DNA of 64,000 nt from Chlorokybus atmophyticus (lineage: Eukaryota > Plantae > Mesostigma and Chlorokybus algae): contig RHPI01002048.1 in NCBI GenBank assembly GCA_009103225.1, forward strand, positions 105,712-169,711. The letters are read 5' to 3'. A program made the translations under genes and the position numbers. The notes under the pieces are model-generated. The model was given only the letters and a program-made list of their open reading frames with translations. It ran no database searches and had not been told where the DNA came from. Below, piece after piece: positions 11,514 to 47,400 of the stretch (the stretch's first letter is position 1; every line of letters starts with the position of its first letter).

Positions 11514-12601
11514 CCCGCCGCTCACCGCATCCACCACGCCACTGCGCCCTAGTGCAGAAACGCAGCACTCCGCTCCGCCTCAGGTCAGCCCCAACGCCAA
11601 ACTCAATGCCCGCACGTGTAACTTCGCATCACTCAGTGACTCGCAAGTGACTTACACAGGCACTTGTACTCACACTCACAAGCACAGGCATAGGCATTCC
11701 AACCATACATGCACTACTACTGCCTGACTTGCTCCTTGAGTCCACCAATGTTCATGCAGCCCCCCCCTCCTTCAAGTAGAAGTGAGTCTCAAAGTACTCT
11801 CCATTGGTAAGTGACCAAGTTACCGACTTTTGTTCTCTCGTGTATTGAATATGAAAAGTATGTAATGAACGCGCACAGATTTAGTTAAATGGGAGCATTT
11901 GGATGATAAACTTGCATAGCCTATGCGGATTTACTATAGACTTGCAAATTTGCACTTATGTTTGATATCATTCATTAAATAATCATTCGTGTGAAGCATT
12001 TCAGTTTGGGTCTAATTAATGCAACCTAATGGTGTGGTTCTCATACGCTATTTGGTGTTGAGCGTAAAATGTTATACGATCAACACCCGAACGTGTATGC
12101 ACGGCAGATCCCGCGCAGGTCAGTATAGCCACATCATCACTTATGTACAAAAGGAGTATGCTACTGTGTAAGGCAAGTGAAAGGTTCAGGTTTTAAATCC
12201 TTTACCTATACAGCCGATTCAAGTTGACGATGTTATATAATGTATAATGCTGCTTTAATACTTAATTTCACAAAGGCGTTGTGTACCTCAACTAAAGTTA
12301 TGCGTCCCAACTTGCCATCCATCGTGGTTGCCGTACTGCAGCTGTGGTATAAGTCGTTCTACTTACACGTTATTCCAATCATATTAAGCATTTTTTCTAC
12401 ACCTATATGTACATGGTTGTGCTTTCTTGCACCAGCAACACCTGCAAGCTATACATCAAGGCTTTGAGTTTGCACAAGTAAGCGTTGTGCTACAGACATA
12501 ATACATTTAACGACTTGTTGGTATCAACGCCACATTTCCCTCCATTACACACGAAATGTTGCAAAGTTTACATAAAATGAATCACATTAATATTTTATAT
12601 T

Positions 12602-23025: not shown

Positions 23026-24968
23026 TGAGTGGCTTTACTCTCTTCAAGGTCGGGACTAAGGCTTACAGCGTCTGGTAGTGATGGTTGACAGGAGGTTGAA
23101 TCCTCGGCCGACGTGTTACCTAGCTCGGGGGGTCTGGTTGAGGTACAACTCGGCTTAGATGCAGGTTTCACTCCCAAACAAGGTACATGCTTTTATAGAC
23201 AACATTGACATGCACACCATGTGCGCATGGTGTTGATGTGCACTTGGTAGGTCTTGCCCGGGCCATGCACGACGCTGTACTGGGCAAAGAACTTGGGGCT
23301 GTTGTGACTGTGGAGGTAAGGACTGTGGGCGCACGCGCGCCCCCCCCCACCCCCCNCCATGCTGGTACCAAACTGCCTCTTCCGTGTTGGTGGTGCTGCC
23401 ATCCTGTTGTCAAACAAGCGCAGTCTTCGGCGGCGCTCCAAGTACGAGCTCTTGCACACAGTCCGCACTCACAAGGGTGCCGATGAGAAGTGTTACACCT
23501 GTGTTTACCAGGTATGTCCATTGTGCAACAGGCCCCTACATGTGCAAGTGCATTGGTAGGCGGACAGTGCTTGTGCATGCCTGTGCAAGGCATGCATGGC
23601 AGGTTTTCTGATTGTCGTTGGTGCGCAGATGGAGGACTCTGAGGGCAACACTGGCGTGTCACTTTCCAAGGAAGTAATGGCTGTTGCTGGAGAGGCTCTG
23701 AAGACCAACATCACAACTTTGGGTCCTCTGGTGCTGCCCTTGTCAGAGCAGTTGATTTTCTTCGTTATGCTAATTGCACGGAAGATTTTGAAGATGAAGG
23801 TCAAGCCATATATCCCTGACTTCAAGCTTGCGTTTGAGCACTTTTGCATCCACGCCGGTGGTCGTGCAGTTATTGATGAGCTTGAAAAGAATTTGAGCCT
23901 CACTCCATATCAGACCGAGCCTTCTCGCAAGACCCTCTGGCGCTTTGGCAATACCTCGTCTTCCTCAATCTGGTATGAGCTGGCTTACTCGGAGGCTGCC
24001 GAACGAGTCAAGCGAGGTGACAGAGTATGGCAGATTGCATTTGGCAGTGGTTTCAAGTGCAACAGTGCTGTGTGGCGCGCACTGCGCAACATTAAGCCTT
24101 CCCCCGATAGCCCATGGGCTGACGAGGTTGGCCAGATGGCCGTTGCCGGGAAGGTTGACCTGTCATGATTGATCAAGTAACCACAGCTCGTCTGAGCATA
24201 AGCGTTGAGGACATAGCGGCACCAACTCCATGTGAGTTTTGCACACAACAATAAGCAAGCAGCGCCTTGGGTCCACTCAGGCATGACAGGCTGTAAGTGA
24301 CAGGCTGTCATGTGCAGTGACACAGCGTACATAAACAAGGAGGTAGCTACCTCAACCTAATAGGATTGTATTGACAGCTCAGACTCTGTAAGGATTGTGC
24401 TGGGCTGCTGTGGCCATGATTTTGTTCATTATTGCAGGCGATGTGTCTTGTGCAAGTTGTGCAGTCATAGTCATTCAATGCTTGCTTTCTGGACATACAC
24501 TACACCCCCCCCCCACACACACACACACCACCACGCATGAATGCCATTACGCATCTGTTTAACCTTAGTGCGTTATACTTCTCAGACATGCGCGTGGACT
24601 TCGGCGCCAGCATTGATAGTGTTGACTGCTTGTTTGTTGAACCGTGTTATTGTGTAGGCTCGACCAGCAGGGTCATGGCTGTTCAAAACAGTGGAGGCGT
24701 ATGTGAACGGGGCATTTGTGGCTACGCTCACAGCAGATGAGCAGCGAAGACCATGGGCTGATACTGTGAGCGTAATGCAACACATGGATGAGCAATATCC
24801 CTTGTGTTGCAACTTGAACATGCACTATTGCTTATGTGATGCATCATGTTCTTGTGTATGTGGCAGCCTGTTCTTGTCAAAGTGAAGGTTGTGGCGTTGG
24901 AGCCGCCACGAGGCCGGCGGTTGGGTGAAGGTGGCAAGCGGGCGTATAGTGAGTTTGGCTGCGAATGA
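22215..24968 (+). CDS. FKBP/SlyD-fold (PPIase-like) protein with putative organellar transit peptide; short exons; one intron contains the N gap and the duplicated KCS block
   Basis: Joined exons read ...[14 protein letters not shown]|[13 protein letters not shown]|[26 protein letters not shown]|[21 protein letters not shown]|[21 protein letters not shown]|[16 protein letters not shown]|[14 protein letters not shown]. This follows the FKBP/SlyD layout GD.V...Y...GE, G...G(L)..A..G..VG, HPLAG..L.F.VKVV. The first exon junction is uncertain. Confidence 0.6.
22988..23020. repeat. (CT)n microsatellite in an intron
   Basis: Direct reading. Confidence 0.95.
23357..24502 (+). repeat. Exact 1,146-bp duplicate of the KCS 3' half and 3' flank (28419-29564)
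   Basis: Constant offset of 5062 and identical ORFs in both copies. It begins immediately after the N at 23356 and is flanked by C-tracts. Confidence 0.95.
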
Positions 24969-26848: not shown

Positions 26849-29230
26849 ATGGGCAATCCTCGGCCTCGTGCCACCGGCGGTGCGGGCCACGGCGCCCCCG
26901 CTGGGCCTGCAGGCGGCGAGCCTGACGCCGAGCAGCCCACTGTGCTTGAGAGTGCTTCGCTTCTGCCTCTGCACAAGCGTCTGCCCGATTTTCTTTCCAG
27001 CGTGAACATCAAGTACGTTAAGCTTGGCTACCATGCGCTCATCTCCCACGCATGGAAGCTGCTGGTCGTTCCCCTTGGTCTCGCCATCCTCGCAGAGCTT
27101 TCCGCCGTGCAGAAGGTAAAAAGCCTGCCACGCCTGGCTTGTGCAAGCATCTTGAACTTGGTGTAGCGTGCATGCGCGATCCTACTGGCAACAATCTTTT
27201 CCATTAAATCTTGCCTGCCTGCGCTGCATGCACTGGCTCCAGCATCTTCTGATTTCCCGGGCTAGCGTGACTATGTAAAGTTCAAGTATGCTGTCAATCG
27301 TCATCTTGCCCGCTTTTCTTTGAATTGTGAACTCGACTGTTCTGCGCTGTCCTTTTTTTCTCATTGGCAGCGCAGTGTGGCTGGTTAACCAAGCAGGCAA
27401 GTGCATGTCCTAGAGCTACAATGGTGTACACCTAGCATTGCCATAACTCACACGCGCTGGCACTTCGCCGTGGTTCAACAGCTGCTTGAACAAGTTGGCA
27501 TAGTGGTTGTTTTGGGCCAGTCGTTGCGGTGCGGGCGCTTAACATGCGCTGGTGGCTCTTTCAGGTCGATCTGCTCGTGCTGTGGGAGCATCTACAGTTT
27601 AATCTGGTTGCGGTTGTATTATCGGCAGCCGCCATAGTGCTTGCTGCAACACTCTATTTCGTGCTAAGACCTAGGCCCGTGTTCCTGGTAGACTTCTCTT
27701 GTTACAGAGCTGAGGACAAGTACAAGGTTAATCACGATGTCTTCATGGAGGGCACTCGGGGTGCTGGTTGCTTCACCCCGGCAAACATTGAGTTTCAAGA
27801 AAAGATCGCGCTGCGCTCCGGTTTGGGAGAGCACACGTACTTGTCAAAAGGGCTGATGACTGTCCCCAAGGACACATCAATGGAAATGGCCAGAGCCGAA
27901 GCAAGGGATGTTATGTTTGGAGGTACAGTATTGGTGTGTGAGATGCAGTTGTGCTACTCTGCGTGCAGTTGCATGTACATTGTGAGCATCATCCTGCCAT
28001 GATGATGATTACTTGCGTGCATCACTTGCAGCTAAGGAGCTGATTGGATTTGCATGCAGCTCTGCAGCAGCTGCTTGACAAGACGAAGATTCGCGCCAAA
28101 GACATTGATATCCTTGTTGTCAACTGCAGTCTGTTCAACCCCACTCCCAGTTTGTCGGCAATGGTTGTAAACCACTTCAAACTGCGGTCCAATGTACGCA
28201 CGTACAACCTCTCCGGCATGGGTTGTTCGGCTGGTGTTATTTCCATTGATCTTGCCAAGGACCTACTGCAGGTAAGGGGTTGTGTCGCTGCTCCAGCTCG
28301 CGTTGAGCATGCAATGGCCCTAATGTTTTATGTTGCTGGCAGACACATGGGAACTCTCTTGCGGTGGTGATTAGCACTGAGAACATCACGCAGAACTGGT
28401 ACTTTGGCAACCAGCGGTCCATGCTGGTACCAAACTGCCTCTTCCGTGTTGGTGGTGCTGCCATCCTGTTGTCAAACAAGCGCAGTCTTCGGCGGCGCTC
28501 CAAGTACGAGCTCTTGCACACAGTCCGCACTCACAAGGGTGCCGATGAGAAGTGTTACACCTGTGTTTACCAGGTATGTCCATTGTGCAACAGGCCCCTA
28601 CATGTGCAAGTGCATTGGTAGGCGGACAGTGCTTGTGCATGCCTGTGCAAGGCATGCATGGCAGGTTTTCTGATTGTCGTTGGTGCGCAGATGGAGGACT
28701 CTGAGGGCAACACTGGCGTGTCACTTTCCAAGGAAGTAATGGCTGTTGCTGGAGAGGCTCTGAAGACCAACATCACAACTTTGGGTCCTCTGGTGCTGCC
28801 CTTGTCAGAGCAGTTGATTTTCTTCGTTATGCTAATTGCACGGAAGATTTTGAAGATGAAGGTCAAGCCATATATCCCTGACTTCAAGCTTGCGTTTGAG
28901 CACTTTTGCATCCACGCCGGTGGTCGTGCAGTTATTGATGAGCTTGAAAAGAATTTGAGCCTCACTCCATATCAGACCGAGCCTTCTCGCAAGACCCTCT
29001 GGCGCTTTGGCAATACCTCGTCTTCCTCAATCTGGTATGAGCTGGCTTACTCGGAGGCTGCCGAACGAGTCAAGCGAGGTGACAGAGTATGGCAGATTGC
29101 ATTTGGCAGTGGTTTCAAGTGCAACAGTGCTGTGTGGCGCGCACTGCGCAACATTAAGCCTTCCCCCGATAGCCCATGGGCTGACGAGGTTGGCCAGATG
29201 GCCGTTGCCGGGAAGGTTGACCTGTCATGA
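26849..29230 (+). CDS. KCS: 3-ketoacyl-CoA synthase (very-long-chain fatty-acid elongase condensing enzyme), 5 exons
   Basis: Exons 26849-27115, 27565-27922, 28060-28271, 28343-28573, 28691-29230. [41 protein letters not shown], catalytic GMGCSAG, HAGGRA, GNTSSSS and [15 protein letters not shown]. Confidence 0.97.
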
Positions 29231-29747
29231 TTGATCAAGTAACCACAGCTCGTCTGAGCATAAGCGTTGAGGACATAGCGGCACCAACTCCATGTGAGTT
29301 TTGCACACAACAATAAGCAAGCAGCGCCTTGGGTCCACTCAGGCATGACAGGCTGTAAGTGACAGGCTGTCATGTGCAGTGACACAGCGTACATAAACAA
29401 GGAGGTAGCTACCTCAACCTAATAGGATTGTATTGACAGCTCAGACTCTGTAAGGATTGTGCTGGGCTGCTGTGGCCATGATTTTGTTCATTATTGCAGG
29501 CGATGTGTCTTGTGCAAGTTGTGCAGTCATAGTCATTCAATGCTTGCTTTCTGGACATACACTAGTATATACATTGTGTACGACGGTACACTGCTGGTTT
29601 GTTGATACCGCTACTGCCTCCATGAGCGGAACTGACTGTGACGCAGCTGTGAGCAGGTGATTAAGTAAAGTCAGTCATACATTACATGGGCAACATGGTC
29701 CATCGGGTCATACTCATGCTAACAGCGCTACACGGCTAGCTACACAA

Positions 29748-32030
29748 CTACACCAGCGCATCTAAAGGCAAACCAGCAACGTCCGCCAGTGCTGTCAATT
29801 TCGTCAAGCCAGACACTCCTTGTGCGGCTGCCAATGCCAACGCCAACAACGCGGAAGCCAGCGTGCGCTGCAGCGCAACAGCCACACGCTGCCGGTACTG
29901 CGTCACGAACCGGGACAGGTAGCGAGCCTCCAGACAGCGATCCTCAATCGCGCGACGCGCATACTGCGATATCACACCCACCAGAGGCTCGCCCATAAGC
30001 CGTATGTCTCCAGTGCCAGCGGTACGAATGTGTCCGTCGGGGGGCAATCGCTGTACTTCGCGCGCTTTGCCTGCTCCGCTGCCCGCGCACTAGCACCCGG
30101 CAAAGCACGAGCGCGTGTGGTAGTGACATTCAACAGTAGACGAGCGTCACGACCCATCTCCGCAGCCACGTTGTCCATGCGACGTCGACCGCCGCCCGCG
30201 CTGGTGTCAGGCAAATAGCCAACCTGCTCTCTGCTGACGGAGTAGCCGGCCTCGCGCATGATGTCGATGAGAGCGTCACGCACCACATTGTGAACCCGCG
30301 TACGATGACCCTCCCACATGCAGTCCGTGAGATGAAGACCTCATGCGTCGTGCAGCTCCTCACCGCAAGCGCACGCCTGCACGCCCAGCAACAGCGGGTG
30401 TGGAAGCCCCAGCAGGTGGCGAACGGCAGTGCGAAACTCAGATTCAGACATCTGCAACTTCCTCCGCACAGGCACGCATAGTAGCCAATATCCCGCCCCG
30501 GTGCCTGCCGCTGACTGCAGCCTCATAACATCATCAGGTGTCGCGGCTGCTACGAAGACGCCCTGACCGCAGAGTCTAGCCTGTCGGTGAGATCCTCCTG
30601 TACGCGGCGACACTCGCCAGCAGCAAACGCCACGAATGAGCTGCTCTGCATTGTACTGACTGGTAGCTGCTTCAATGCGAGACGCAGGTCGTGCTGGAAC
30701 TGCAAGGTGGCGGTTGCCACCTCGTCAATCGCGCTGGGTAGGGCGAACGATGCCACGGCTACAGGGATGAATCTGCGTTGAATGACGGAGGCAACCGCTG
30801 CTCAACCACCAATGAAAGCTGCGGGGGCCACGGCAGCACAACTCCGAATCCCGATGCCTCCCATCGTCACAGGCAGCGTCAGCTGTATGGCACCGGTGGC
30901 GTGTACGTCGGTGAGCTGCATGAGAGTGCCAAATATATCGCGCACAGCAGCGTCGAACGCTGTCAGCTGCTGCAAGAAGGTCTCGGACGGTGCCACTGTC
31001 CGCATGAGGTACGAGGGCGCGTGGCGATGCAACGGGATAATATCAGCAAAGCGACCTGTGTGTCTCTCATGCCTCCCAAAGTCTCCAACGTGGCTCGAGC
31101 GTCCGAAAAGCGCTCCTCATAGTATGCCTAAATACTTGCCGTCGTGCCCACGGGAACGCTCAATGGACTGATGCCCTTGGTGGCGATGGTGATGCTATTA
31201 GGGATGGGCATGGAGCGAGCATTGCGTGCTACGGTGCCGGGGCAGATCGCAACTGTCTTGTCCAACCTCACGCGCAGACCAACACCCTGCAATGCATCGC
31301 ACAACTCTGCCAGTGCGAGCAAGACGTCTTCGTCTGGGCCGATAAGGAATGTGTCATCAGCCGGTGACAGTCGGGAAACGCTGCACCACCTCCGAGCCGA
31401 CGCGGGTGTGCACCAAGGCATAGAGCAGGCCTGCTAATGGGTACCCCTGCCGAGTCCCTATGATGGAGGGTACGGTGATGACGGCGCCGCCGCGACGGTA
31501 AAACAACGAGGACGGCGCCGAGTAGAACAAGCGCACGAACGGGATAAGGTATGCGAAAGGTCCAGTTCGCAGCAGCTCAAACATGGTAGTACAATCAACA
31601 CTATTGAAGGCGTTTGCAACATCAAGATGCAGCAACATGTGGTCCGGATGGGCCCGGAGAGCAACTCTGATGCCTTGCGCGACACTCTCAGCGCCGTTGC
31701 GGGTGGCTACGCTGAATTGCATTGGCTCGAAGTAGGTTGCCGCAATGTCCCGATCTTGACACGCCAGCATCCGCACAATCAGACACTGCAATATCTCCCC
31801 CATAGCAATACGCACTCCACCAATGGGCTTGCGCAGAGCAATGAGAGTGCAAGCAGCCAGAGCTGTTGGTGCCACTACAGGGGCACTTCCTCCTGCTAGC
31901 AACGAGCATACTCGAGAAAGTGACCAGAACGCCTGTTGTACTGGACTTGGCACTACAGCTGTTCTGGACTCTGCATAACGACATGCAGACGGCACCACGC
32001 CAACCCGCACCAGTCCGTCATGTGAGCCCA
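29748..32030 (-). mobile_element. CRE-clade non-LTR retrotransposon (RT + CCHC + restriction-like endonuclease), 5'-truncated and decayed
   Basis: RT motifs LIALRKP.GGVR.IAMGE, QFSV..RNGAE, LDVANAFNS, GTRQGYPL, ADD, LP...GGIGI; zinc knuckle CACGEELHDA*GLHLTDC; RLE motifs HNVVRDAL, RRMD...LLLNVT, KRAKY, FVPLALETYG. Several stops and frameshifts. Confidence 0.85.
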
Positions 32031-33420
32031 GCCCACTGAACACGTATTGGGACCGGCAAGCCAACGTATAGCAGCACATTGCTGATACAGCCGACATGCC
32101 TCTGCGTGACAACGAAGCACTGAGGCCCCTGAATACCGTTCAACTTCATGAGCGCTACACCGCGCTGGAACCGGCGTTCAAATGGCGACAAGACCAAGCG
32201 GCAGCAATCGACGCAAGAGCGCACGCCCTTGCCAATGCTCGCGCTGGCGTTCTTCAACCCACAATTGCTAGCCCATCATCCAGTACGACACCTCTCGCCG
32301 GTGGGCCCGACATTGATTAGACGAGGGCGCTGGCCCAACAGATCAGGGGGGTGATCGCCCCGCTGCTACCCGCCTTGTTGGAAGACTTGCCTGACGATCA
32401 ACGGGATCCATGGAGAGGCTACCTCACACCGCAGAAGTGGACACAACGAGATGGAGCAGGTTCAATCGAAGAACAGCAACTTCGCACTGCCCTGTTGCGA
32501 CAAGCAACCATACTGCACCGACAGAAAGGCATCGGCCTGAGACGGATGTTAAGGATGCGAGAAGATGGTACTGCGGCTCGAGTAAGACTAGTGACTTTGC
32601 TAGTCACCAATCACCGCGCAGTCCCCCTGATCGCCTTCGGCACCGGATTGTTCTGGTTGGACGCCTTCCTGCGCTCGCTACGGCAAGCCTATGACGAGGT
32701 TGCCTCGGCAGCCACTGACACCCTAGAAGGAGCACAAAAGGCCATACTGAGGTTGCCAGGGGTGGAAGCAGCGCGGCAATGCAGACGCATCGAAGCTCCT
32801 TATGAGCAGCATGTCCAACAGCCAGAGATTTACCTCACTGTGCGGGCGCGAGCAACAACAGTGCTGGAGGTGGGAGTGGTCGATGGCAGATGGGATGCCT
32901 ACATGGAAGGGATCCTAAAGGTTCCCACCATCACCCACGACATAAGAGCGCGGCTCCTGCGCGCAGTGTAGCTCCTGCCCATGCCTTAAAATCACCGCTG
33001 ATGTGACGTGGTCAACAACCCAACAGCCACTTGGGAAGGTACGCTGGTCAGGAAGGCAGCTCATGCAATACGCTGGACTTTTGTGGAAGAACAGGCTGCA
33101 CGAGAGGCGGGCCCACAAACACCCGGTCCTCCAGGGTTTCCCCAACAGCCATTGGCTACGCCGCCAAGAATCACCCCGGCCACACAGAGACGCAATCCCC
33201 CTGCGCCAACCAGGGCAGCCACACGCAGCACCGCCAGCACCCAGGCCACAGCGTGTTTATCAACAGCCAAGACAAGGACGATTCGGGCCAGGCCGCGGTT
33301 AAGGAGGTGCTCAAGACCCAGCGGGTTGAGGGGCGCTTGCCGCACTGTGCTCGACACCACCGGAAGAGACTGCAGCACCAAATACCCCACGCACACGCTA
33401 CCGACGGTTCAAGCGGCTGC
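32030..33420 (+). pseudogene. Gag-like region of the DNMT-gypsy element
   Basis: Long coding-like frame (ORFs 32096-32320, 32351-32971, 33008-) broken by stops. A frameshifted CCHC-like knuckle C.HCARHH.KRDC lies near 33330-33375, directly upstream of the protease. Confidence 0.6.
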
Positions 33421-33440
33421 GCATCCACGCCAATGCAGCC

Positions 33441-33880
33441 ATGATCGCCAACCAAGGCAAGCATGTCACTATTAATGGACGAGCACTCAAGCGGGTGATG
33501 CTATACTCCGGAGCCCAGCCCGTCATCATCGGACGTTACCCTGCACGTGACCTTGGCATCACCAGCGCTGAGCAGATGCCGTGCCCATACGTACTCGACA
33601 CCGCAACCAACAACCATGACAAGGTGATTGGCATCACCAAGCAAGCCCTCTGCATTCGCTTGACAGGAGTGGACCCGTCCCATAGCACCGAGGTCATACA
33701 GAAGTGTGTGGTCACCGATGCAGTATCCTTCCACCTGTTGTTGGGACAGGACTTCAACTTCCCTGTTGGCATGGGGCTGGACTGCTGGACAAAGAAGGCA
33801 TGGTTTCGTTCTCATTGGGATGAGGAGGACGGAGAGGTTCAAGGATATCTGCCTGTCGAGATGGTGGCTCGCACTCGTTC
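33441..33880 (+). pseudogene. Retroviral-type aspartic protease (catalytic D mutated to Y)
   Basis: VMLYSGAQPVII (for LDSGA) and the C-terminal LLLGQDF motif. Confidence 0.75.
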
Positions 33881-34200
33881 CCACCGGAGGTCAGCTGCCA
33901 CAGCTACCTACAAGTCGTTGTCGGCAACCACTAACAGGTCAGCTGCGACAGCCACCCATAGGTCGGGTTCGACAACCACTGACAGATCATCTGCGGTGGT
34001 CACCCACAACTTGGACCAAGACTCTCCTATCCCATATGACGAGTCTCACGAAGATGCCACTGAAGAAGTGGCCCACCAGAAACCAGCGGAACGCCGGTAG
34101 CGCGCACACGTGGTCGCACATCTACTACTGACCAGACCATGGCTCACTTCACGGTTCCCTCTCTACAAGGACCAAGCTGCTGTCCAGGAACAACACCGGG

Positions 34201-34485
34201 TGTCAGGAGATGGGGTGCTCCCTCCTCCCTTTAATCCCCTACCTCATCACCACCACCAGCCACGTCGCCCACGCCGCCGTCGCCAGGGGCAACTGCCGAA
34301 GCAGAAGATCCCCTGGCTAATGGCGGCCGCTGCGTTAGCAGCGTCGCCATGCGCGCTAATATCGACATGAGACTCATGTCTCATGTCGATATTGGTGTTA
34401 CAGATAAGTAACACTACATTAGGGCCTTAACATAGGTTAACGGCCCTAATATGGCTTAATAGGCTGTACAATCCCGTTGGGACCC
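34201..34485 (+). repeat. Direct repeat, copy 1 (pol linker + hairpin cassette + chromovirus LTR end)
   Basis: Matches 40173-40456 with scattered substitutions and indels (low-to-mid 90s % by eye). Confidence 0.9.
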
Positions 34486-37420
34486 CTATTTCATCCTAAA
34501 TAAGGGCGGGGAACCTCTATGGAGGTAGCACACCGTTACATTCCCCCCCACTTAGGTTTCAATGTCCTCATTGAAGGGTTAGCAAAGCCCCCCCACGAGT
34601 AAAGGAACGAAAGTAGTATGAGAATCAGGGCCGAAGCGGTAAAGATGTCTGCCAGCACCCTTTTACCGTCCGCGTGTGGACACAGTACTCCAGTACCCCC
34701 GAAGAATCTCCTGGCAATTGGTAAGATTCCTTTCGGGCTCCCTTGTATTGTGCTCAACACCATACCCTTTCCATTTCAGCAAGTAAAACGGCGCGTGTCC
34801 GCATCGAGGCTTACGATGAGTTAGGATTGCTTCCACCTCATACTCGAAAGTATCGTCGCCATCCACTGCAACGGGGGGTGGAGGAGGTTGAACCCGACCG
34901 TCAGAACGGTACGGTTTCAGTACACTCACATGAAACACATTGTATATGCGTATCGATTTTGGCAAGTTCAAACGATACGCGTGAGTGCCGACCCGATCAA
35001 TCACTCTTAACGGGCCTATCCAGCGAGGGAAAAACTTGCGGGTACCCACTCTCTTGATGAATATATTTTGGTGCTGAGAAGCACCGAACAGCCCATATCG
35101 TAATTGGCCTCTCTACGATGCGCATCAGCATGGGCTTTTTGTCTGTCTTGCGCTGCGCGCAGACAGTCCTTTGCCAACGCCAACCTATCCTGCATGGCCG
35201 AAGCCATCTCGTGCGCTGCAGGTATGCGAGTCATGTCGGTAGCGGGCAACTTAATGTTTGCATGACTCAGTGGATGCACTCCATAACTCAAACAGAACCG
35301 GGTTTCCTGCACGCTCTCTTGCCATGCATTGTTAATCGCGAACTCAGCCATTGGGAGATAAACATCCCAATCAGATTGGTTCGGATTTACATAATGCCGG
35401 ATGGTTTCCTCAATCACTTGATTGGCGCGCTGTGTCTGACCATCCGTCTGTGGATGGCAAGCTGTGCTCATGTTCTGCTGAATATGTAAGAAGCTGCATA
35501 GCGACTTCTAAGATTGAGCTACAAATCGCGGATCGCGATCAGACACGAAGTTACGAGGCAAGCCATGTAACTTAAACACAGAGGCGACAAAAACCATCGC
35601 TAACTCACGGAGCCTATTTCCGTGCGGCAAGGGACAATGTGAACCACTTTTGTTAAACGATCCACAAAAACTGCAACCAAAGTGTGCCCTAATGCTGTCT
35701 CCGGGAGCTCAATAATTGGGTCCATACTCACACTTTCCCACTTGCCATCAGGAACAGGCAAAGGTCGCAGCAACCCAGCGGGTTTCTGACGTAACGGCTT
35801 GTCACGCTGACATTTGTTACACGTGTCAACATAATGCTTCACGTCAACAGGCAACGATGGCCACCAGTACAACTGTTGCGCTGCTTTAGTAGTCTTGCGA
35901 CCCCCAAAGTGCCCAGTATACAGTGGATCGTGTACTTCAGCTATGCATTCTATGCGCAACCCAGCGTGGTCAGGTATCACCAAGCTGGCGCTCATATAAT
36001 ACAAGTTGTCTCTTTTGTCAAGCTTTTGTACATTCTCTTGTATAGCGAACCATGGGTCTAATGCATACCCCTGTAAAACAGCTTTCACAAATTCATCATC
36101 AGGAGGCAGTGTACCCTGCGTTGCAAGCAACTGCGCACGCATAACTGCCAACAATGACGGACAGCGACTCAGAGGATCGGCCATGTTGGTTCTGCCCGGC
36201 CAGTATACCCATTCAAAGGTAAACCGCGACAGGAACTCATTTCCAGCGAGCTTGCCTACGCGACAAGTTTAGCTGTGTTGAGAAGTACACCAACGGGTTG
36301 TGATCAGTCACCACTGTTACCTGAACTCCCTCGAAGTAACATCGCCATGTTACAAGAGCATGCACTATACCAAGCAATCCTTGCTCAATGGTAGTGTAGT
36401 TCACCGCTGCTGGGATGAATCCTACTCTCATAAGCACATGGTCGGCCATCCTATAGCAATACTGCACCACACCCAAGGGTGGAGGCATCGCTAATCACAG
36501 TGAAGTGTTTATCCCAATTTGGCAATGCCAAAACTGGTGCCGAAGTCAAAGCCAGCTTCACTTGTTGCATAGCAGCTTCTTGTGCTGCTGTCCAAGAGAA
36601 TGGGGCATCCTTTCGCAACAGTTTTGTCAAAGGCACCACAACTATAGAGTACCCCATCACAAAATTGCGAAAGTAGTTTGCCAACCCCAAGAATGATCGC
36701 AACTGATGGATGTTCTTAGGTTGAGGCCAATCTTTTACCACTTGCATTTTGCGAGGGTCAGGTTTGACACCCGCACCACTCACAATATGCCCTAAGAATG
36801 GCAACTCTGTCTTGCAAAGTCACACTTTGACAAGTTGGCAAACAAGCGATGTATACGCAGCAAGGCGAACACCGCTTTCAAGTGCTGCTTATGCTCTTCC
36901 TTGGTTTTACTAAAGACAATGATGTCATCCAAGTAAACCATAACATACTTGCCAAGTATGCCACCAGAAATCTTATTCATTTCCTTTTGAAACACTGCGG
37001 GCGCATTAGTCAATCCAAAAGGTAACACTTTGTATTGATAATGGCTCGAAGGTGTTCTGAATGCTGTCTTGTAAATATCAAAAGGATGAATCCGGATTTG
37101 ATGATACTCACTTGTCAAGTCCAACGTAGTACGCATTTCCCGACAGTTTATCAAACACATCATCAATCCGGGGCAACGGGTATCGATTACTTACCGTAAT
37201 CTTGTTCAAAGCACGGTAATCCACACACAAGCGCAGCTTTCCATTCTTTTTCATCATAAACAAGATGGGCGCGCCAAAGGGTGAAGAACTTGGTTCAATC
37301 AATTCCCCCGTGTAAGATATTGGGCATGGTGAGACAAACAAGATATTCGTGCACTTGGAAACACCTCTTGCACATCCACTTGTAAGTAAGTAATGGTAGG
37401 CAGTTTCACGGTAAGGTACC
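34396..37420 (-). mobile_element. Chromovirus (Ty3/gypsy) 3' half: RT-RH-INT-chromodomain, PPT and 145-bp 3' LTR
   Basis: LRLCVDYRALN, LDLTSEYHQ, PFGLTNAP, YLDD, SDAS..GCG, TDHNPL, GHFG..KT, SMD, TDGQT; chromodomain [23 protein letters not shown]; PPT AGTGGGGGGGAA; LTR TGTAACGG...TGTAACA at 34540-34396. Confidence 0.92.
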
Positions 37421-37858
37421 TTTCATAGATATCAATGAATGTGGTTGCAGAGCATGGTGAGGCACAATGTAGTCATTGCGAGCAAGCCCAACTTGAACAT
37501 GGTAATTTTTTAATGCCGCTGTCTATGGGGGATGTTGTACTGTTCCAATTTGTACTCAAGTTTGTGAATATTAGTGTGATCGCGTTGAAACCCTTGAAGC
37601 GTGTTTTTAACATTGTGAAGAGCAATCATTCACAATTCTACAGGAGGCTAGTTATGTTACAAGAGATTGTGCATGTACACATTGAGATAACGGTTGGGTT
37701 TATGATCACGTTATTATACCAATGTACATAAGGGTAGTAGATTGTTTGCAAAGATACTTCACCTCCCACATTGCATTGCAATATATGCACATGCACATTG
37801 ATGAACTATGTGACATGTTGCAGCATGTACACCGCAACTGTTAATCAACAATTAACAT

Positions 37859-40172
<2,314 letters not shown>

Positions 40173-40456
40173 TGTCAGGAGAGGGGGTGCTCCCTCCTCC
40201 CTTCAATCCCCTACCCCAACACCACCACTAGCCACGTCGCCCACGCCGCCGCCGCCAGGGGCAACTGCCGAAGCAGAAGATCCCCTGGCTATGGCGGCCG
40301 CTGCGTTAGCAGCGTCGCCATGCGGCTAATATCGACATGAGTCTCATGTCGATATTAGCCGCATGGTGTTACAGATAAGTAACATTACATTAGGGTCTTA
40401 ACATAGGTTAACGGCCCCAATATGGCTTAATAGACTGTATAATCCCGTTGGGACCC
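40173..40456 (+). repeat. Direct repeat, copy 2, containing a 49-bp perfect palindrome
   Basis: Matches 34201-34485. The palindrome at 40318-40366 has 24-bp arms and a 1-nt loop. Confidence 0.9.
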
Positions 40457-40457
40457 T

Positions 40458-41535
40458 TGGGACCTAAATGGCCACAAAACACACTTCGTGCTTTTGTGGC
40501 CTAGTGGTCTGTTACACCAGGTGGCCACTTGAGTAGTGGAATTTCACGTATTCCGGCGACAACAAAGTGTCACCGTGTTGGAACTATCTGGAGGAATAGG
40601 TAGTGGCCTCGCCGCTGTCCTCAACACCGGCGCGACGGTCACCAAGTACTTCTACTGTGACCCTGATCTCCATGCACAGATTGCCCTGGGCCACCACCTG
40701 CGCCACCTACACAAATGCTACCCGCAGCGACTGCCGCTATCGGCACTGCAAGGCAGTCTGAAGGCACTGCCACATGCCATCCGTTTAATTACTGCGGATC
40801 ACCTCCTAGCGGTGGGCAACATCGACCTGCTGATAGCAGGATGGGAGTGTCAAGCACATCCAGAGCAGGCAGCGACCAAAGACTCGCTGATCCTCGCTCA
40901 CAACTGTTCTGGGAACTGATGCGTGTCATTAAGATCCTGCAGAGCAGCCAGCTGTCCAGGCCTACAGGATACATCATCGAGAATGTGCACTTCGAGGACG
41001 ATAAGCGCCATCACGTGGCCAACAGCTTCCGACAGGTGTGTTCTTTATTAGGGCATCCTCTCAGAATTAATGCAGCGCGGCATGGCTCCCGGGCTCAGCG
41101 CGTTCGCGCCAAGTGGACCAACCTGGCAATAGTTGAAGATCTCTTTGCTGCTGAATATCTGCACAGCAGTAGTCCACGCGATCTGACCGTTGACACTATC
41201 CTGGATTCTGGGCGCACAGCACAACCTGTCACCCAACACAATCACCAGCACTTCTACCCGTGCAACCAGCCTGGTCAACTACGTCGTGCGCTCCCCACTC
41301 TGATGTCTTACCCGGGTTCATACGCCTTCCGCAACCACGGCTCAGGCATGGTGTTGGATTCCAACACAGGCTAGCTAGAGGAACCCAACGCGCGTGAGCG
41401 CGAACGCGCCATGGGCTTCTCTCAAGGCAGCATCACAGGTTCCACGCTGACCAACAGTCAGCAATGCCAACTATCGGGACGCGCCATGGATCAGAACAGC
41501 ATGGTATGGTTACTGGAAATGTGCTTTGCTCTTCA
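40458..41535 (+). pseudogene. C5-cytosine DNA methyltransferase domain inside retrotransposon pol
   Basis: Motif I VLELSGGIG; IDLLIAGWECQ (motif IV, Cys retained); after a 1-nt frameshift near 40856, SRAG...DPRSQLFWE; motif VI GYIIENV; motif VIII HGSRAQRVRAKWTN; ALPTLMSYP; EEPNARERERAMGF; motif X GRAMD. Intronless and runs into RT in frame after a TAG at 41372. Confidence 0.92.
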
Positions 41536-41789
41536 AAACCGCCATGTGTCCTTTCAGGAGCTCGGATACCTGGCAGCGGGGTGGGCAGATCGCGTGCAAG
41601 AGACCAAAGCGGCACACACCGCCCTCGAAATCGCCCATATGGAGGAGCAGGCAGCAGTCACTGTGAATAACATCCCAGTGATCGCCAACGCCACCTCTTG
41701 GTCCCATGCCATAAGACCACTGACTACAAGCCAAACGCGAGAACAACTGGAGGCTTTCCTCAACAAGTGGAGAAGTCAGTTCAATTTCA

Positions 41790-44448
41790 GCGTACTGGGG
41801 GTTTGCTCAGTCTACCAAATGGACATCAAGTTGGTGGACACCGAACCGGTGTTTCGACAACAGTACCGACTCTCCAAGTTGGAAGAAGACTTGGTGGAGC
41901 AGAGGTGCAAGGCTCTGCTAGATGCAGGCCTGATCGAGGAGTCCACATCGGACTTTGCGGCCGCGACCGTCATGCCCCTGGAATAGGATTTAGCAAGCAA
42001 CTGGACAGACTGGGGCATGTGCGGCGACTATCGCCCCCTCAACAACAAGACCAAACAAGACAAATATCCAATGCCTACTGCAGAAGGTATCTTTGATGAT
42101 GTAGGAGACCGCACCGTTTTTAGCATCCTGGATATGCGACAAGGGTACAACCAGACCGTCCATCAAGGAGGAGGACAAGCACAAGACCTCTTTCTGGGGC
42201 AACCGGCAGGTGTACCAGTGGAAGGTCATGCCCTTCGGACTAACGAACGCTCCTGCCAAGTTCCAGCGCGTCATGAACAAAGCCTTGAAGGCGCTGGACG
42301 TCGCGCGATGCTACGTTGACGACATTCTCATCTTCAGTCGCAATAACGACGAGCACCTGCAGCACATCGAGGAAGTGCTTGAAAGACTCAAGGAGGTGGG
42401 GATGACAGTGCACCCCGACAAGTGCACTTTCTTCACTCGCAAGGTACCCTACCTAGGGCACATGATTGTGCCCCACGGTGTGTACGTATAGCAGGCATTG
42501 GTGGAGGCTTTGGCGGCTATCCCTGCTCCCACAGACCTTACCCGTCTGCGTGCTTTTCTGGGCCATGCCAACTACGCTCGCTGGTTCGTGAAGGACTCCG
42601 CAAAGATCGCGCGACCCCTCAACGAGCTTCTGGAGAAGGAGGTGGAGTTTGCCTGGAAGGAGCCACAACAGCAGGCGTTTGAGGAGCTAAAGGGCAGGCT
42701 CACCGCCGCTCCCATCCTGCAACGTCCTGACTACAACAAGCCCTTCATCCTCCACACCGACTGGAGCAAGCTTGGGATGGGGGCTGTGCTGGTACAGCAC
42801 GATGAAAACAAGAAGGAGCGGGTGGTGTCGTACGCCAGCCGAAGCAACAACAGCGCTGAGGCCGATTACAGCAGCTACGAGGGGGAGTGCCTCGCTGCAG
42901 CATGGGCTATCTTCTTCTTCAGACCTTTCCTCTTTGGTCAACAATTCCAACTGGGTACCGACCATCAGCCACTCAAGTGGTTGATGACCAACTAACATCT
43001 AATAGGGAAATTTGCTCGCTGGGCCCCGTTGCTGCAGGAGTATGACTTCGAGATCGACCACCGCGCAGGCCTCACCAACCAGGACACTGATGGCCTCAAT
43101 CGCAACCCTCGCCGCAGTACCAACAATGCAACCGGAGCTCGGCACGAGCTCGGCCCCGCAGCAGCAGCTCCCACCATGGCGGCCATGTTTGCTGTGACCG
43201 CGTTACAATCAGGGCGCCAGATCAACACCACCTCAACGACAGAGGAGATTCTTGCCCTTGAGTCTACCGACCCCACAGTGACCACACCCCTAGGGGACGT
43301 CCACGCGGTCGCTATCGATGTCGACGACACCGAGCTGGCACCCACCGACACCAGGCAGGACATATGGCTGGACAAGCCATCACTCTCTTTCCTGCAAAGT
43401 GGCCGGTTTCCCTCCAACATGAGTGCACGAGAGAAAGATCGTGTCAGTCAACGCACCCGCCACTGTTGGTGGGCGGATGACAAGGTGTGCCGCCGCGTTA
43501 TGGACAAGGACAAGGAGGTGCCAACACCAGCCACACGCGAGGGCAGCATCGCTGCCCTCCACACTGAGCTTGGACACTTCGGTGTCAAGCGTACCGTCAG
43601 CCTGGTAAAGGCGCAATATTGGTGGTATGGGCTGTCTAAACAGGTGCAGGGGTTTGTCAGTCGTTGCCAGCAGTGCGACATGGTACGCGCCAGCCTTAAT
43701 ACACGTTCTATTGCCGAGGACTCGACATCTTCGGAGACTTGGCAGCCTCGGCACGGGGCAACCGCTACATCCTGGTCATGATCGAGCACTTCTCCAAATG
43801 GGTGGAGCTGGTGCCATTACCCGACAAGAGCAGCAGAGGGGTGTCTCGAGCCTTCCGCTCCCATGTCCTCAGCCGGTTTGGCAGCTGCGCTGAGGTCATC
43901 ACCGACCAGGGCACTGAATTCAGAAGGGAGTTCGATTCCCTTCTAAACAGATGCTACATCAATCATCACCGCACTTCGCGTGACCACCCTCAAGCCAACG
44001 GTCTCGCCAAGCGGACAGTACAGACTATCAAGAAGACACTCCGCAAGTACGTGCTGGAGTATGAGAGGTGGCTCTTGGATACCGACTGTTAAAGCAGGCG
44101 GCTTTGCGCGAGTACAACCCATACTACCTGCTCTTCGGGCGTCCGCCATTGCTTCTTCTTCTTGCACAGCAGGAAGCAGACCGTGTGGTGAACAACCTCG
44201 ACGATCCCGACAGGATGCACCACAACATTACCACACGCGCCACGCTGTTCGAGCAAACCGTCCTGATGGCCTTCAACAACCTGCGCATCGCACAGCACCG
44301 CGACACCCTGCGCTGCAAGCGCGTGCGGAGCGGCTTCTACAAGGAGCGTCAACGGCGGTTTCAAGCAGGGGCCTTTGCCTACCGCATGGCAGCCACCAAA
44401 GACACGCTCGACACTTCGGTGCGCCGCACCGTCTACAAGGTACTTTAG
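41790..44448 (+). pseudogene. RT-RNase H-integrase of the DNMT-gypsy element
   Basis: MCGDYRPLN, LDMRQGYNQ, MPFGLTNAP, YVDD, FLGHANY, TDWS, YEGECLA, TDHQPL, HTELGHFG..WW..C..C, TDQGTEF and QANGLAKR (catalytic E to K). Stops, frameshifts and a deletion near 43710. Confidence 0.92.
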
Positions 44449-44592
44449 GTGTACCCCACTGGAGTGCTGGATCTTCTTGGTCAGAATGGCGAGAGGTTGA
44501 AAGACAACATGGTGAACTGCGCGCCATGTCACCTCCCTTACATAGCAGGCTTCGCGCGCATCCAGCACCCTCGCCCCGCCCGCAGCACACGC

Positions 44593-44727
44593 TGTGAACG
44601 CTGCGGCAGTGCCGGCGACGACGCAGTCATGATGCTCTGCGATGGTTGCAACAAGGGCCTGCATTGCTACTGTCTGGAGTCCCCATTGGACGCAACACCC
44701 ATGGAGGAGTACTGGTGCGACAATTGC
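44593..44727 (+). CDS. PHD finger at the integrase C-terminus (part of pol)
   Basis: CERCGSAGDDAVMMLCDGCNKGLHCYCLESPLDATPMEEYWCDNC has an intact C4HC3 pattern with the conserved W. Confidence 0.9.
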
Positions 44728-44806
44728 CGCACCAACAGTCCTTCTCACCTGCGTTAACAGCTGAGCTCTGGAGCTAGAACCTCCCCAGAAGCTCGGAGGG
44801 GTGGCT

Positions 44807-46564
44807 TGTTGACTGTGTGTCCTACAGCACAGCATGTACACTAAGGAGGACACCGCCTCCACATGTCCGTGTGACTCAGCACCGGTAGAAATGGATTTCG
44901 GCAAATCAGGTTGGATCCGCAACTTTGTAATGGACGAAGCCGGACATTATTTGCGGATTTCGCAAAGTTTATAACGGATCCGTATATATGTTGTAGCTGC
45001 AGCCAGAATTTTATTGCGACCGGTCACAAACGGCAATCCGCCGGTGATGATCGTAAGTACCGGATCCCCAACAATGTTAAGGATGCGGTGTTTACGTAAT
45101 CAAGGGTTCAGGCCGTGAGAAAGACTTGTACAAGTCGCAATTACAATTGTGACCAATTCGTTAACAGTGCGTCTTTACTCCCGAACGCAATTGAGGACTC
45201 GACGATAATATTATAATGCATTCAGGTTGCATGCTAAAGCTGTACACATCATCATTGAAATCGTGACCGGCTCCATCAATGATACGAGACTTTATACTTA
45301 ACAACGCGAAACGCTAAGATCGAGCCTTCCATTGATATAAACCATATTAATGTTACGACCACATCATTGCCAAATTGTCAGTTCAACCCCGCGGCCTGCT
45401 AGTAGCAGGCCGCGGGGCAAGCAAGTAGAAGGCTGCGACTTGCATGTATAATTATTGGTAAACCGTGGTAGCACATGAGGTAAACATGTAAAGACTTGAC
45501 TAGAACTCCGCAACCAACCTTGCGCCAGCAGGTGACGCAGGGCGCATAATGCAAACATTTGCCGGTCTTCCGCGCTGTGATTGGACAAAACGGCAAGTCG
45601 AACAAAGTCTCCCTCCCCAAGTCACCTTTATAGTGGTACAGTCCACCTTTATCTTTTTGATACCAGTGGTATATATATGTAAATACCGCGGTGTATATAT
45701 GTATATACAAAAATATATATATATGTACGACTATATATGTATATGTATAAAAACATATATTTGTATATGTATATATATATACATATATATATGTATATAT
45801 ACATGTATATATACATATATATATGTATATATGCATATACCGGTAGTGCCGTTGTATGCAGCTGTTGGTGCATGCGTGATGCATGCATTGCGGCATGTGA
45901 GACAATTTGAGGCAACAGGTAGAGGTTGTATGCTTTACCAATGCGATAATGGGCGTCTCGTGTCGTCGTAGTCTAGTTGGTCGGTTGTTAGGTCGTATGA
46001 TGTTGCTTAATCCAACAGGTGCTGCCGCGCAGGTTCGAAACTCGATGGAGACACGAAAATCCTTATGCTGTGGCTCTTTGGGTTTTTCGCCGCGAACTGC
46101 GGCCATAACATTTCTGGTTAGATTACGCATCAAGATTAATCTCCTTGATACATGATCCAACCAAAAAATGGTTTATGATGTGACTATAATTAAGTTCAAA
46201 AAAAGACGGATACCGAACTTAATGCACACCAGCTAATTGACCTTAATAGCAGCTCGATATCAAACAAAGTTGTGGCTGCAGCCGCAAAGAGTGCAAAAAT
46301 GGATATGTTGCTTGCATATGGATCTCTAAGTAAGTTATAGCTGAATCTCCAATTAATTTGTGGGCAAGGCCGAACTGTTGGGGGGCCATTTTTACAAGTG
46401 CAGCGGCAGTGGAGCAGCTCCAGCAAGCACTCCTTGCCATACGAGCTGGGTTATCTTTTACTGTTGCTATACGTTATAACATGTTGCAGCGACAGGGTTA
46501 GCAAGCCTGTCTCTTCCTGTAGCGGCCCGAGACAGTGTGACCCTCGACTCCCCTCAACCCGACA
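44807..46564 (+). repeat. 3' LTR of the DNMT-gypsy element, split into 44807-44879 and 46401-46564
   Basis: The two halves match the uninterrupted copy at 47163-47400. TG...CA ends, preceded by a PPT. Confidence 0.85.
44880..46400. mobile_element. CACTA/CMC-like DNA transposon (1,521 bp) inserted in the LTR
   Basis: Imperfect TIRs CACCGGTAGAAATGG and CACTTGTAAAAATGG (12/15), with 3-bp TSD CAG at 44877-44879 and 46401-46403. Contains an internal (TA)-rich tract at 45665-45838. Confidence 0.75.
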
Positions 46565-47162
46565 GCTGCCATGCCTAGTGCCTACACATACCAGCCTTCA
46601 TTGGGCATGTCTACATCGAAACCGTCGCCCGGCCTACCAGCATACCAACGCGCGCGCGTCCCTGACCAGTAGCTAGGTCATGACTTCAGGGTAGCTCACG
46701 ACTATAGCCTACATAGGCACCGCGCGTAGCTGTTCAGTTGTGAGTTCAGTTATAAGTAGTGTTCTATATTGAAAGACAATCGATGTGGAAAAAGCCTCGA
46801 TATGACCGTTAGCGTATGTTCTAAACAGTCATAATTTGACTTGTATAAGTGGTCACAGTGTTCACCGGATCAGCTGGTGACACTGTGAGTGAAAAAGCTA
46901 AGAGCTTGTGAAACGACTTGAACTGCGAACACGCCATCCCGGTTACCAAGAACCCCCTCACTGTGTGAGAGCCTGTGCATGCTCGTGTGTGCATCATGAT
47001 TGTCATCGCTGTGAGCTTGATGTGCCTGGTTGCAGTGTGTTTGTTGGCATCAGTCAGGGCATAGTATCCACGTGTTGCTTGCTCATTCACCTCGCTTAAC
47101 AGTGTAACACAATTTTTGCTCATGCAAAGAACTGTGTAAACGGCACTACCTATAAAGTGGCT

Positions 47163-47400
47163 TGTTGACTGTGTGTCCTACAGCACAGCATGTACACTAA
47201 GGAGGACACCGCCTCCACATGTCCGTGTGACTCTCTCTGCGGCAGCGGAGCAGCTCCACCAAGCACTCCTCGCCATACAAGATGGGTTATCTTTTACTGT
47301 TGCTACATGTTATAACATGTTGCAGTAATAGGGCTAGCAAGCCTGTCTCTTCCTGTAGCGACCCGAGACAGTGTGACCTTCGACTCCCCTCGACCCGACA
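47163..47400 (+). repeat. Second, uninterrupted 238-bp LTR copy preceded by a PPT remnant
   Basis: The first 71 nt are identical to 44807-44877 and the rest matches 46403-46564. GTGGCT precedes both LTRs. Confidence 0.85.

Follow-up and report, generated by a model that had tools for sequence, protein, structure and literature searches.

Cytosine methylation is the main means by which hosts silence transposons, and a transposon with its own de novo methyltransferase inverts the usual silencing logic. The closest described system comes from the charophyte Klebsormidium nitens, where intronless Dnmt3-type DNA methyltransferases (DNMTs) lie inside the Pol polyprotein of gypsy retrotransposons (KnitGypsy-Dnmt3; de Mendoza et al. 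2018, PMC5890265). The catalytic residues of these domains are conserved, their Ka/Ks is <0.2, and the repeats of the elements are "the same as that of a DIRS retrotransposon", i.e. A-coding region-B-A-B (PMC5890265). Dnmt3 domains borne by DIRS elements methylate CG de novo in yeast (PMC5890265), and the phrase "streptophytes (Gypsy-DNMT3)" is used by that group in a 2026 preprint. Here we analyze a 64,000-nt stretch of the Chlorokybus atmophyticus genome (assembly GCA_009103225.1, contig RHPI01002048.1, positions 105,712 to 169,711, forward strand), which we call the window and in whose own numbering coordinates are given. We read the locus under study as one degraded, 5'-truncated copy of a Gypsy-DNMT3 retrotransposon, namely a Ty3/gypsy-derived element with the polyprotein order (Gag)-protease (PR)-DNMT3-like methyltransferase (MTase)-reverse transcriptase (RT)-RNase H (RH)-DDE integrase (INT)-PHD and repeats in the order A-coding-B-A-B, whose enzyme would act by the mechanism proposed below; we assign this reading, mechanism included, a probability of roughly 0.8. 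The element is a further member of the already described Gypsy-DNMT3 (KnitGypsy-Dnmt3) kind, as judged against the published description of that kind.

Domains were called from stop-to-stop translations of the plus strand of the 32-47 kb region, the pieces of which were then scanned with Pfam. Within one element, and all on the plus strand, we found the protease (33492-33911), the DNMT (motifs at 40581-41497), RT, RNase H, DDE integrase and a PHD finger (to 44757). Pfam domains and shared reading frames thus bear out the initial annotation of this DNA, which had placed a DNMT within the pol of a Ty3/gypsy-type element, after the protease and before RT, with RT, RNase H, integrase and PHD on a single strand. 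The RT (41720-42488, frames taken from tblastn with the pol of an intact relative, L002) has YVDD at 42312-42323 and matches RVT_1 with E 1.2e-27 in the piece 42105-42488. It is followed by a Ty3/gypsy-type RNase H lying between the stops at 42489 and 42993 (42492-42992; RT_RNaseH_2 E 1.9e-33, RT_RNaseH E 8.8e-29) and by the integrase (42996-44445), with an H2C2 zinc domain at ~43533-43691 (Integrase_H2C2 E 1.4e-13) and an rve core at ~43745-43987 (E 2.1e-9). The polyprotein closes with a C-terminal PHD finger (44449-44757, E 3e-9; C4HC3 residues 44593-44727) and its natural TAA stop at 44755-44757. RVT_1, RT_RNaseH_2, Integrase_H2C2 and rve therefore stand in the gypsy order RT-RH-INT; a tyrosine recombinase was sought through Phage_integrase, which matched neither the window pieces nor the intact relatives, rve and Integrase_H2C2 being found instead. 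No chromodomain follows the integrase of this outer element, where the PHD finger sits; the only one seen (39713-39961) belongs to a nested element described below. Upstream, the predicted aspartic protease (33492-33911) matches Asp_protease_2 weakly (E 0.0097, piece 33330-34097), but its 40-42% identity to the L002 protease lends support to this call and to the earlier report of a protease here.

The DNMT3-like C5 cytosine methyltransferase domain (PF00145) occupies 40522-41545. Alignment with the relatives places motif I, ELSGGIGSG, at 40581-40607; motif IV, IAGWECQ, at 40833-40853; motif VI, YIIENV, at 40970-40987; motif VIII, RVRAKWTN, at 41099-41122; motif IX, ERERAMGF, at 41396-41419; and motif X at 41474-41497. 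Motif IV reads ECQ where all five close relatives (P0001-P0005) read PCQ. The order from I to X is normal, i.e. not rearranged as in DRM, and the motifs noted previously (I, IV, VI, VIII and X) were all recovered in this order, far beyond what chance would give. PF00145 itself scores E 5e-5 on one window fragment (40667-41371), while the domain reaches E 7e-69 to its relatives and is 44-46% identical to P0001-P0005. As to its type (METHYLTRANSFERASE type), a profile built from the window copy and the five relatives has its best PDB matches in the catalytic domains of DNMT3C, DNMT3A and DNMT3B (E ~1e-15), with M.HaeIII (9e-8), DRM2 (6e-4) and DNMT2 (0.03 or worse) lower, so that DNMT3A/B/C lead the bacterial MTases by ~7 orders of magnitude. 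The profile alignment to DNMT3 spans motifs I, IV, VI, VIII and IX/X. Judged by this profile comparison, the family enzyme is of the DNMT3 type. PWWP and ADD domains were looked for as well; in that part of the family polyproteins Pfam gives only PF00145, with a lone PHD finger at the far C-terminus. With the nested insert taken out, protease and DNMT both read in frame 0; downstream, DNMT and RT are both in frame 2, and no intron intervenes, just as the initial annotation had it (an intronless DNMT in the pol frame).

That nested insert is a chromovirus (34201-40516, plus strand), foreign to the DNMT element and delimited by self-BLAST, by its long terminal repeats (LTRs) and by the flanking CCGGG/CCAGG. 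Its 3' LTR is 344 bp long (40173-40516, TGTCAG...TGTTACA), and its partial 5' LTR (34201-34485, cut at 34485) is 92% identical to the 3' copy. The element has TG..CA ends, and its flanks (CCGGG at 34196-34200 versus CCAGG at 40517-40521) match at 4 of 5 bp. We call it a chromovirus on account of a separate set of domains, RNase H, integrase, SH3 and chromodomain, that Pfam detects in it (37856-39961, the chromodomain at 39713-39961). When position 34200 was joined in silico to 40522, the translation read ...QEQHRVAT*VVEFHVFRRQQSVTVLELSGGIGSG..., such that the protease-DNMT linker, whose left half (34101-34200, frame 0) ends in the CCGGG that forms the left target-site duplication (TSD) of the insert, enters DNMT motif I in frame 0 with a single TGA. 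The resulting spacing between protease and DNMT, ~350 nt, compares with ~280 nt in an intact relative. Colinearity of the domains, as claimed before, therefore holds for their order but not for an uninterrupted span, which the unrelated chromovirus breaks.

The chromovirus is itself rearranged. Its segment 34456-36765 equals the reverse complement of 37859-40172 (97%, 2317 nt), making a head-to-head inverted partial duplication, and RT/RH/INT/SH3/Chromo domains are found by Pfam on both arms, with the minus-strand arm continuing into RT. The switch point of the inversion is a 30-nt LTR-end stretch that is also present, inverted, directly upstream of the 3' LTR. This inverted duplication could be a genuine fold-back rearrangement, or it could stem from an error in the assembly or the reads.

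The linkage of DNMT and RT recurs in other genomes. Using as query the stitched window DNMT, with X at its two breaks, we matched 10 database proteins at 40-46% identity and fetched the contigs of the relatives as L001-L009. The order PR-DNMT-RT-RH-INT-PHD is present in L001, a chromosome of the liverwort Calypogeia fissa, and in the metagenome loci L002-L008, of which L008 breaks off after the DNMT and L007 ends inside the integrase; L009, another metagenome locus, has the same order from protease to integrase, its contig ending before the PHD. P0134 (2188 aa) carries CCHC-PR-DNMT-RT-RH-INT in a single open reading frame (ORF). A search for other copies linking the DNMT to this RT thus returned nine further loci as well as single ORFs, and since these carry both domains, the linkage is a family trait. 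The layout PR-DNMT-RT-RH-INT-PHD is accordingly, as far as the database sequences go, not private to the Chlorokybus copy and marks a widespread streptophyte lineage. As side observations, the DNMT between protease and RT can be recognised by its C-terminal part only in L004-L007 (JGI metagenome contigs), and the same degraded copy of this lineage turns up again, in several samples, on at least 16 contigs.

Among the relatives, the enzyme is maintained by strong purifying selection. In the five close relatives that were aligned (P0001-P0005), PCQ, ENV, RxR and the other catalytic motifs do not vary. Across four relatives with DNA, dN/dS was 0.06-0.13 over the 320-codon DNMT domain, as opposed to 0.39-0.78 in the linker just downstream; dS was saturated for some pairs, the cleanest pair giving a ratio of 0.09 at dS 0.70. 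Because the ratio is low in the domain and higher in the linker, we conclude that the DNMT is kept by selection on the element.

The window copy itself is dead, as the initial annotation had stated. It has at least four frameshifts, seven stops, two catalytic motif changes, the nested insert and a missing 5' end. Comparison with the intact relative L002 by tblastn locates four changes of the pol frame (0 to 2 at 40854-40858, 2 to 0 near 42155-42170, 0 to 2 near 43709 and 2 to 1 near 44060), the first of them a 1-nt frameshift within the DNMT. The in-frame premature stops are at 34098, 40530, 41372, 41984, 42489, 42993 and 44446 (the last a TAG). The catalytic motif of the protease, D(S/T)G, has become YSG (LYSGA, 33501-33515; DSG or DTG in the aligned relatives), a DSG-to-YSG substitution that joins the change of PCQ to ECQ in the DNMT. 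With these frameshifts, stops and catalytic substitutions, the copy is unable to move or methylate. TAG accounts for five of the seven premature stops (34098, 41372, 41984, 42489 and 44446); this would be compatible with C-to-T decay of CAG, which is a CHG context for methylation, although the count is small and the ancestral codons are only presumed.

The ends of the element differ from those proposed initially, which ran from 32030 to 46564. The proposed start falls inside a minus-strand, degraded RT resembling that of long interspersed nuclear elements (about 29700-32139; RVT_1 weak at E 0.0017, motifs visible), which abuts the truncated 5' side, and the true 5' end is missing. Between this RT and the protease, a plus-strand remnant (32140-33491) with open stretches such as 32321-32968 lies where Gag would be expected, and the truncation point is somewhere within it. 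The Gag reported earlier was not recovered: the window gave no Pfam match for it at E up to 5, no CCHC knuckle by pattern scan and, by phmmer and tblastn, no similarity to the Gag of L002, L003, L008 or L009. Since a CCHC knuckle is present upstream of the protease in those four loci and in P0134, we conclude that Gag was lost here through decay or truncation.

At the 3' side, the element runs on past 46564, through two further repeats, to 47400. Repeat B1 (44801-46564), composed of 44801-44877 and 46403-46564, is split by an unrelated 1.5-kb insert; after a 2-nt GC spacer comes repeat A2 (590 nt, 46567-47156), which starts TGCCATG at 46567 and is the sole A copy in the window; and repeat B2 (47157-47400), placed by self-comparison, ends the element with ...CCCGACA. 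Segment 44801-44877 is 100% identical to 47157-47233, and 46403-46564 is 91% identical to 47239-47400. The stretch previously taken for an LTR (46403-46564) is thus the end of B1 in a B1-A2-B2 block and not one of a pair; indeed, self-comparison found no repeat joining the 5' and 3' sides of the window copy, as paired flanking LTRs would. The polypurine tract proposed alongside it comes down to a short purine/G run, GGAGGGG, directly before B1, and to no more than that; a G-run precedes B1 in Calypogeia L001 and in L002 as well. Neither a sensitive word-7 BLAST nor a 26-mer search with 3 mismatches detected a second A copy (A1) in the window, and because this 5' repeat matching A2 is absent, we regard the copy as 5'-truncated. 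Its surviving termini are the ...ACA at 47400 and the TG with which A2 starts, the 5' terminus being missing. The insert within B1 (44878-46402) is 42% GC with a TA-rich microsatellite core (45647-45841) and its terminal inverted repeat, noticed on visual inspection, is short and imperfect; the insert gave no protein-domain match, and a repeat finder returned only TA-rich low complexity.

The complete repeat set is visible in Calypogeia fissa L001, with A1 at 1861-2197, then the coding region, B1 at 16367-16468, A2 at 16467-16802 and B2 at 16802-16903; in L002, B...B was seen. L001 ends in TGTCAC...CGACA and is flanked on both sides by a duplicated 4-bp AATG, and such TG...CA ends with 4-bp flanks are what a DDE integrase produces. 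The window copy, L001 and L002 share an internal B/A junction of the form ...CGACA, 2 nt, TG..., which looks like two element ends joined together. A1 and protease are ~7 kb apart in L001 (2198-9240), a far longer distance than L002 and L009 show; further nested insertions may account for it, or else the 5' region may be very long.

The family consensus of the PHD finger is C-E-V-C-x-x-P-D-x(4)-M-L-L-C-D-x-C-x(2)-G-x-H-x(2)-C-L-x-P-P-L-x(2)-V-P-x-G-D-W-x-C-P-x-C, and the family profile best matches the PHD fingers of CHD4, KMT2C/D, KDM5/Lid, WSTF, ATXR5, BAZ2A/B, PHF12, PHF21A, UHRF1 and AIRE, most of which read the histone H3 tail with unmethylated K4 (H3K4me0). As the initial annotation did, we infer that the gypsy type may be able to methylate its own cDNA or its insertion site. 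In active copies, an MTase made alongside RT and integrase would methylate the element's new cDNA, or else the copy just integrated, with CG as the probable target, so that a new copy would from the outset look like DNA methylated by the host. Fused to the integrase, the PHD finger would read the unmodified H3 tail (H3K4me0) and tether integration to chromatin that lacks H3K4 methylation, playing the role that the chromodomain has in chromoviruses and the ADD domain in DNMT3.

Three other accounts of the locus dispute what the element is. The window copy is heavily rearranged and has other elements immediately upstream of the DNMT, as would be the case if the DNMT, whether a piece of a host gene or inserted on its own, had come to lie beside a gypsy pol by accident. 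We consider such juxtaposition highly improbable, because the DNMT is in a common frame with the protease on one side and with RT on the other, the same order is found at nine other loci and in single intact ORFs, and the DNMT segment itself has neither a TSD nor a repeat at its flanks; when we looked for signs of a separate DNMT insertion with its own TSD, the only TSD-flanked insert was the adjoining chromovirus. That chromovirus could instead be the owner of the DNMT, given that the open frame of the DNMT begins at 40533, 17 nt past the end of its LTR at 40516. This proximity carries very little weight, however, against a DNMT that lies outside both the LTR and the flanking duplication, a chromovirus pol that ends with its chromodomain at 39961, relatives in which the protease immediately precedes the DNMT and no chromovirus intervenes, and the fact that no chromovirus copies with a DNMT downstream of the 3' LTR were seen. 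Finally, A-coding-B-A-B split direct repeats are typical of DIRS/PAT/Ngaro elements (PMC5890265), which would make this a DIRS-like element moving by tyrosine recombinase rather than a gypsy element. The Pfam evidence for Integrase_H2C2 and rve, the lack of a tyrosine recombinase among these matches and the gypsy order RT-RH-INT speak against this, as do the TG...CA ends and 4-bp flanking duplication of the Calypogeia copy, which are of the sort made by DDE integrases; we therefore judge a DIRS origin very unlikely, if by a hair less so than the two preceding accounts.

Harder to set aside is the possibility that the element is as we describe it and the enzyme does a different job, acting in trans on the chromatin of the host, either around insertions or across the genome, acting on RNA, or serving as a non-catalytic DNA-binding protein or decoy. 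This would accommodate a family enzyme without the PWWP and ADD domains of DNMT3, an element with no special CpG depletion and a Klebsormidium domain that gave no DNA methylation in yeast (PMC5890265). The invariance of PCQ, ENV and RxR in P0001-P0005 and a dN/dS of ~0.1 nevertheless argue for a working enzyme, the profile fits the DNA-specific DNMT3 far better than the tRNA methyltransferase DNMT2, and related DIRS-borne Dnmt3 domains methylate CG de novo (PMC5890265). We thus consider another job for the enzyme unlikely, while taking it seriously.

Several observations weigh against a self-methylating Gypsy-DNMT3 element as such. The yeast assay just mentioned, the sole published one for a Klebsormidium Gypsy-Dnmt3 domain, showed no methylation and was called inconclusive (PMC5890265). 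CpG observed/expected is 0.72-0.78 in the element and 0.76 in the rest of the window, and because the two do not differ, there is no element-specific methylation footprint. By itself, the window DNMT returned no PDB match and a weak Pfam match, the family profile being needed to place it, and AlphaFold on the 5-sequence DNMT alignment gave a predicted local distance difference test score (pLDDT) of 35, which is unusable. Since Gag and the 5' repeat are absent from the window copy, the full architecture rests on the relatives. The likeness to KnitGypsy-Dnmt3 rests on its published features. Lastly, the DNMT tree on which we separate two layouts below was built by neighbour joining without bootstrap support, and the split into two clades is for this reason only indicative.

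The Gypsy-DNMT3 reading is embedded in a broader database survey. A profile search of 1.84 billion representative proteins returned 411 clusters at E<1e-30, many of them polyproteins of 1300-3400 residues; most of the long clusters are polyproteins. Domain placement on all profile matches resolved two layouts, a minority PR-DNMT-RT-RH-INT(-PHD), which includes the window copy, and a majority RT-RH-DNMT-INT-PHD. Named members of the former are four strains of Closterium (Zygnematophyceae) and Calypogeia, whereas the only named member of the latter is a "pol" protein, KAF8056149.1, of the chlorophyte Scenedesmus sp. PABB004. The layouts separated cleanly in the tree of 109 DNMT domains, with the window copy in the PR-DNMT-RT clade. 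Public sequences place the kind widely among green algae and in one liverwort at least. No K. nitens protein was among the named homologue and cluster matches. We put forward tentatively, at somewhat less than even odds, that Gypsy-DNMT3, far from being a peculiarity of Klebsormidium, is an old group, diverse and spread over the green plants, in which two layouts are fixed: PR-DNMT-RT-RH-INT-PHD in streptophytes, namely Closterium, a liverwort (hence a land plant as well) and Chlorokybus, and RT-RH-DNMT-INT-PHD in chlorophytes such as Scenedesmus. Given the B/A junction common to three distant members, these elements may replicate by way of an intermediate with joined ends, and a DDE integrase may then resolve that junction. 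The literature searched held no description of this breadth, of the two layouts or of the B/A junction. A single dead copy adds little by itself; what may be new (the breadth, the two layouts and the joined-ends junction) comes from the database survey. Since the family is large, intact in some genomes and present in Zygnematophyceae and a liverwort, Closterium and liverworts are tractable hosts in which self-methylation and PHD-integrase targeting could be tested.

Elsewhere in the window, the element is flanked by plant-like genes, namely exons of a 3-ketoacyl-CoA synthase (KCS), a CCCH zinc-finger protein, an M28 peptidase and an ATG4-like protein; the KCS exon is at most 75-79% identical to database proteins, land plants being on top. 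The last KCS exon is covered by a 1146-nt direct duplicate of 100% identity (23357-24502 and 28419-29564). Poly-C with an N adjoins its first copy at one edge and poly-C/(CA)n at the other, which suggests an assembly artefact rather than a real duplication. Further away, a plus-strand open frame of 559 aa (12581-14257) has no Pfam match and carries the motif LYMTLKLHKDPPKPRWI, which we take to resemble the start of the RT of Penelope-like or other retroelements; this frame may be another retroelement.

Compared with known systems, the Chlorokybus element is closest to KnitGypsy-Dnmt3, with which it shares an intronless Dnmt3-type DNMT in a gypsy-type Pol, a streptophyte host and, judged by the full set in Calypogeia L001 (the window has B1-A2-B2), the A-coding-B-A-B repeats. 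As in Klebsormidium, the catalytic residues are conserved in its relatives and the DNMT is under purifying selection, with ratios of <0.2 (Ka/Ks) in the former and 0.06-0.13 in the latter. It differs in that the nearest DNMTs found to the window copy are only 44-46% identical. The Scenedesmus-type RT-RH-DNMT-INT-PHD elements have the same DNMT family, a gypsy RT, RH and integrase and a C-terminal PHD, but their DNMT lies between RNase H and integrase rather than between protease and RT, and the two DNMTs fall in separate clades. SymbioDIRS-Dnmt3 of Symbiodinium (PMC5890265) likewise combines a Dnmt3-type domain in Pol with A-coding-B-A-B repeats and two coexisting domain orders; however, it is a DIRS element with a tyrosine recombinase, in a dinoflagellate host and from an independent capture, and its DNMT methylates CG in yeast (PMC5890265). 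Classical Ty3/gypsy LTR retrotransposons (Metaviridae) have two identical flanking LTRs, which are lacking here, where the 3' end is B-A-B. Chromoviruses resemble the element in that their gypsy pol, too, has a domain that reads chromatin attached to the C-terminus of the integrase, although in our element this reader is a PHD finger and not a chromodomain, a DNMT is carried and the repeats are split instead of paired LTRs. Host DNMT3A, DNMT3B and DNMT3C, for their part, are the best structural-database matches of the enzyme and align with it at motifs I (LF-GI-TG), IV, VI (ENV), VIII (R-R-.W.N) and IX/X, whereas the version of this family has neither PWWP nor ADD, sits inside a retrotransposon polyprotein and reads WPCQ in place of SPCN.

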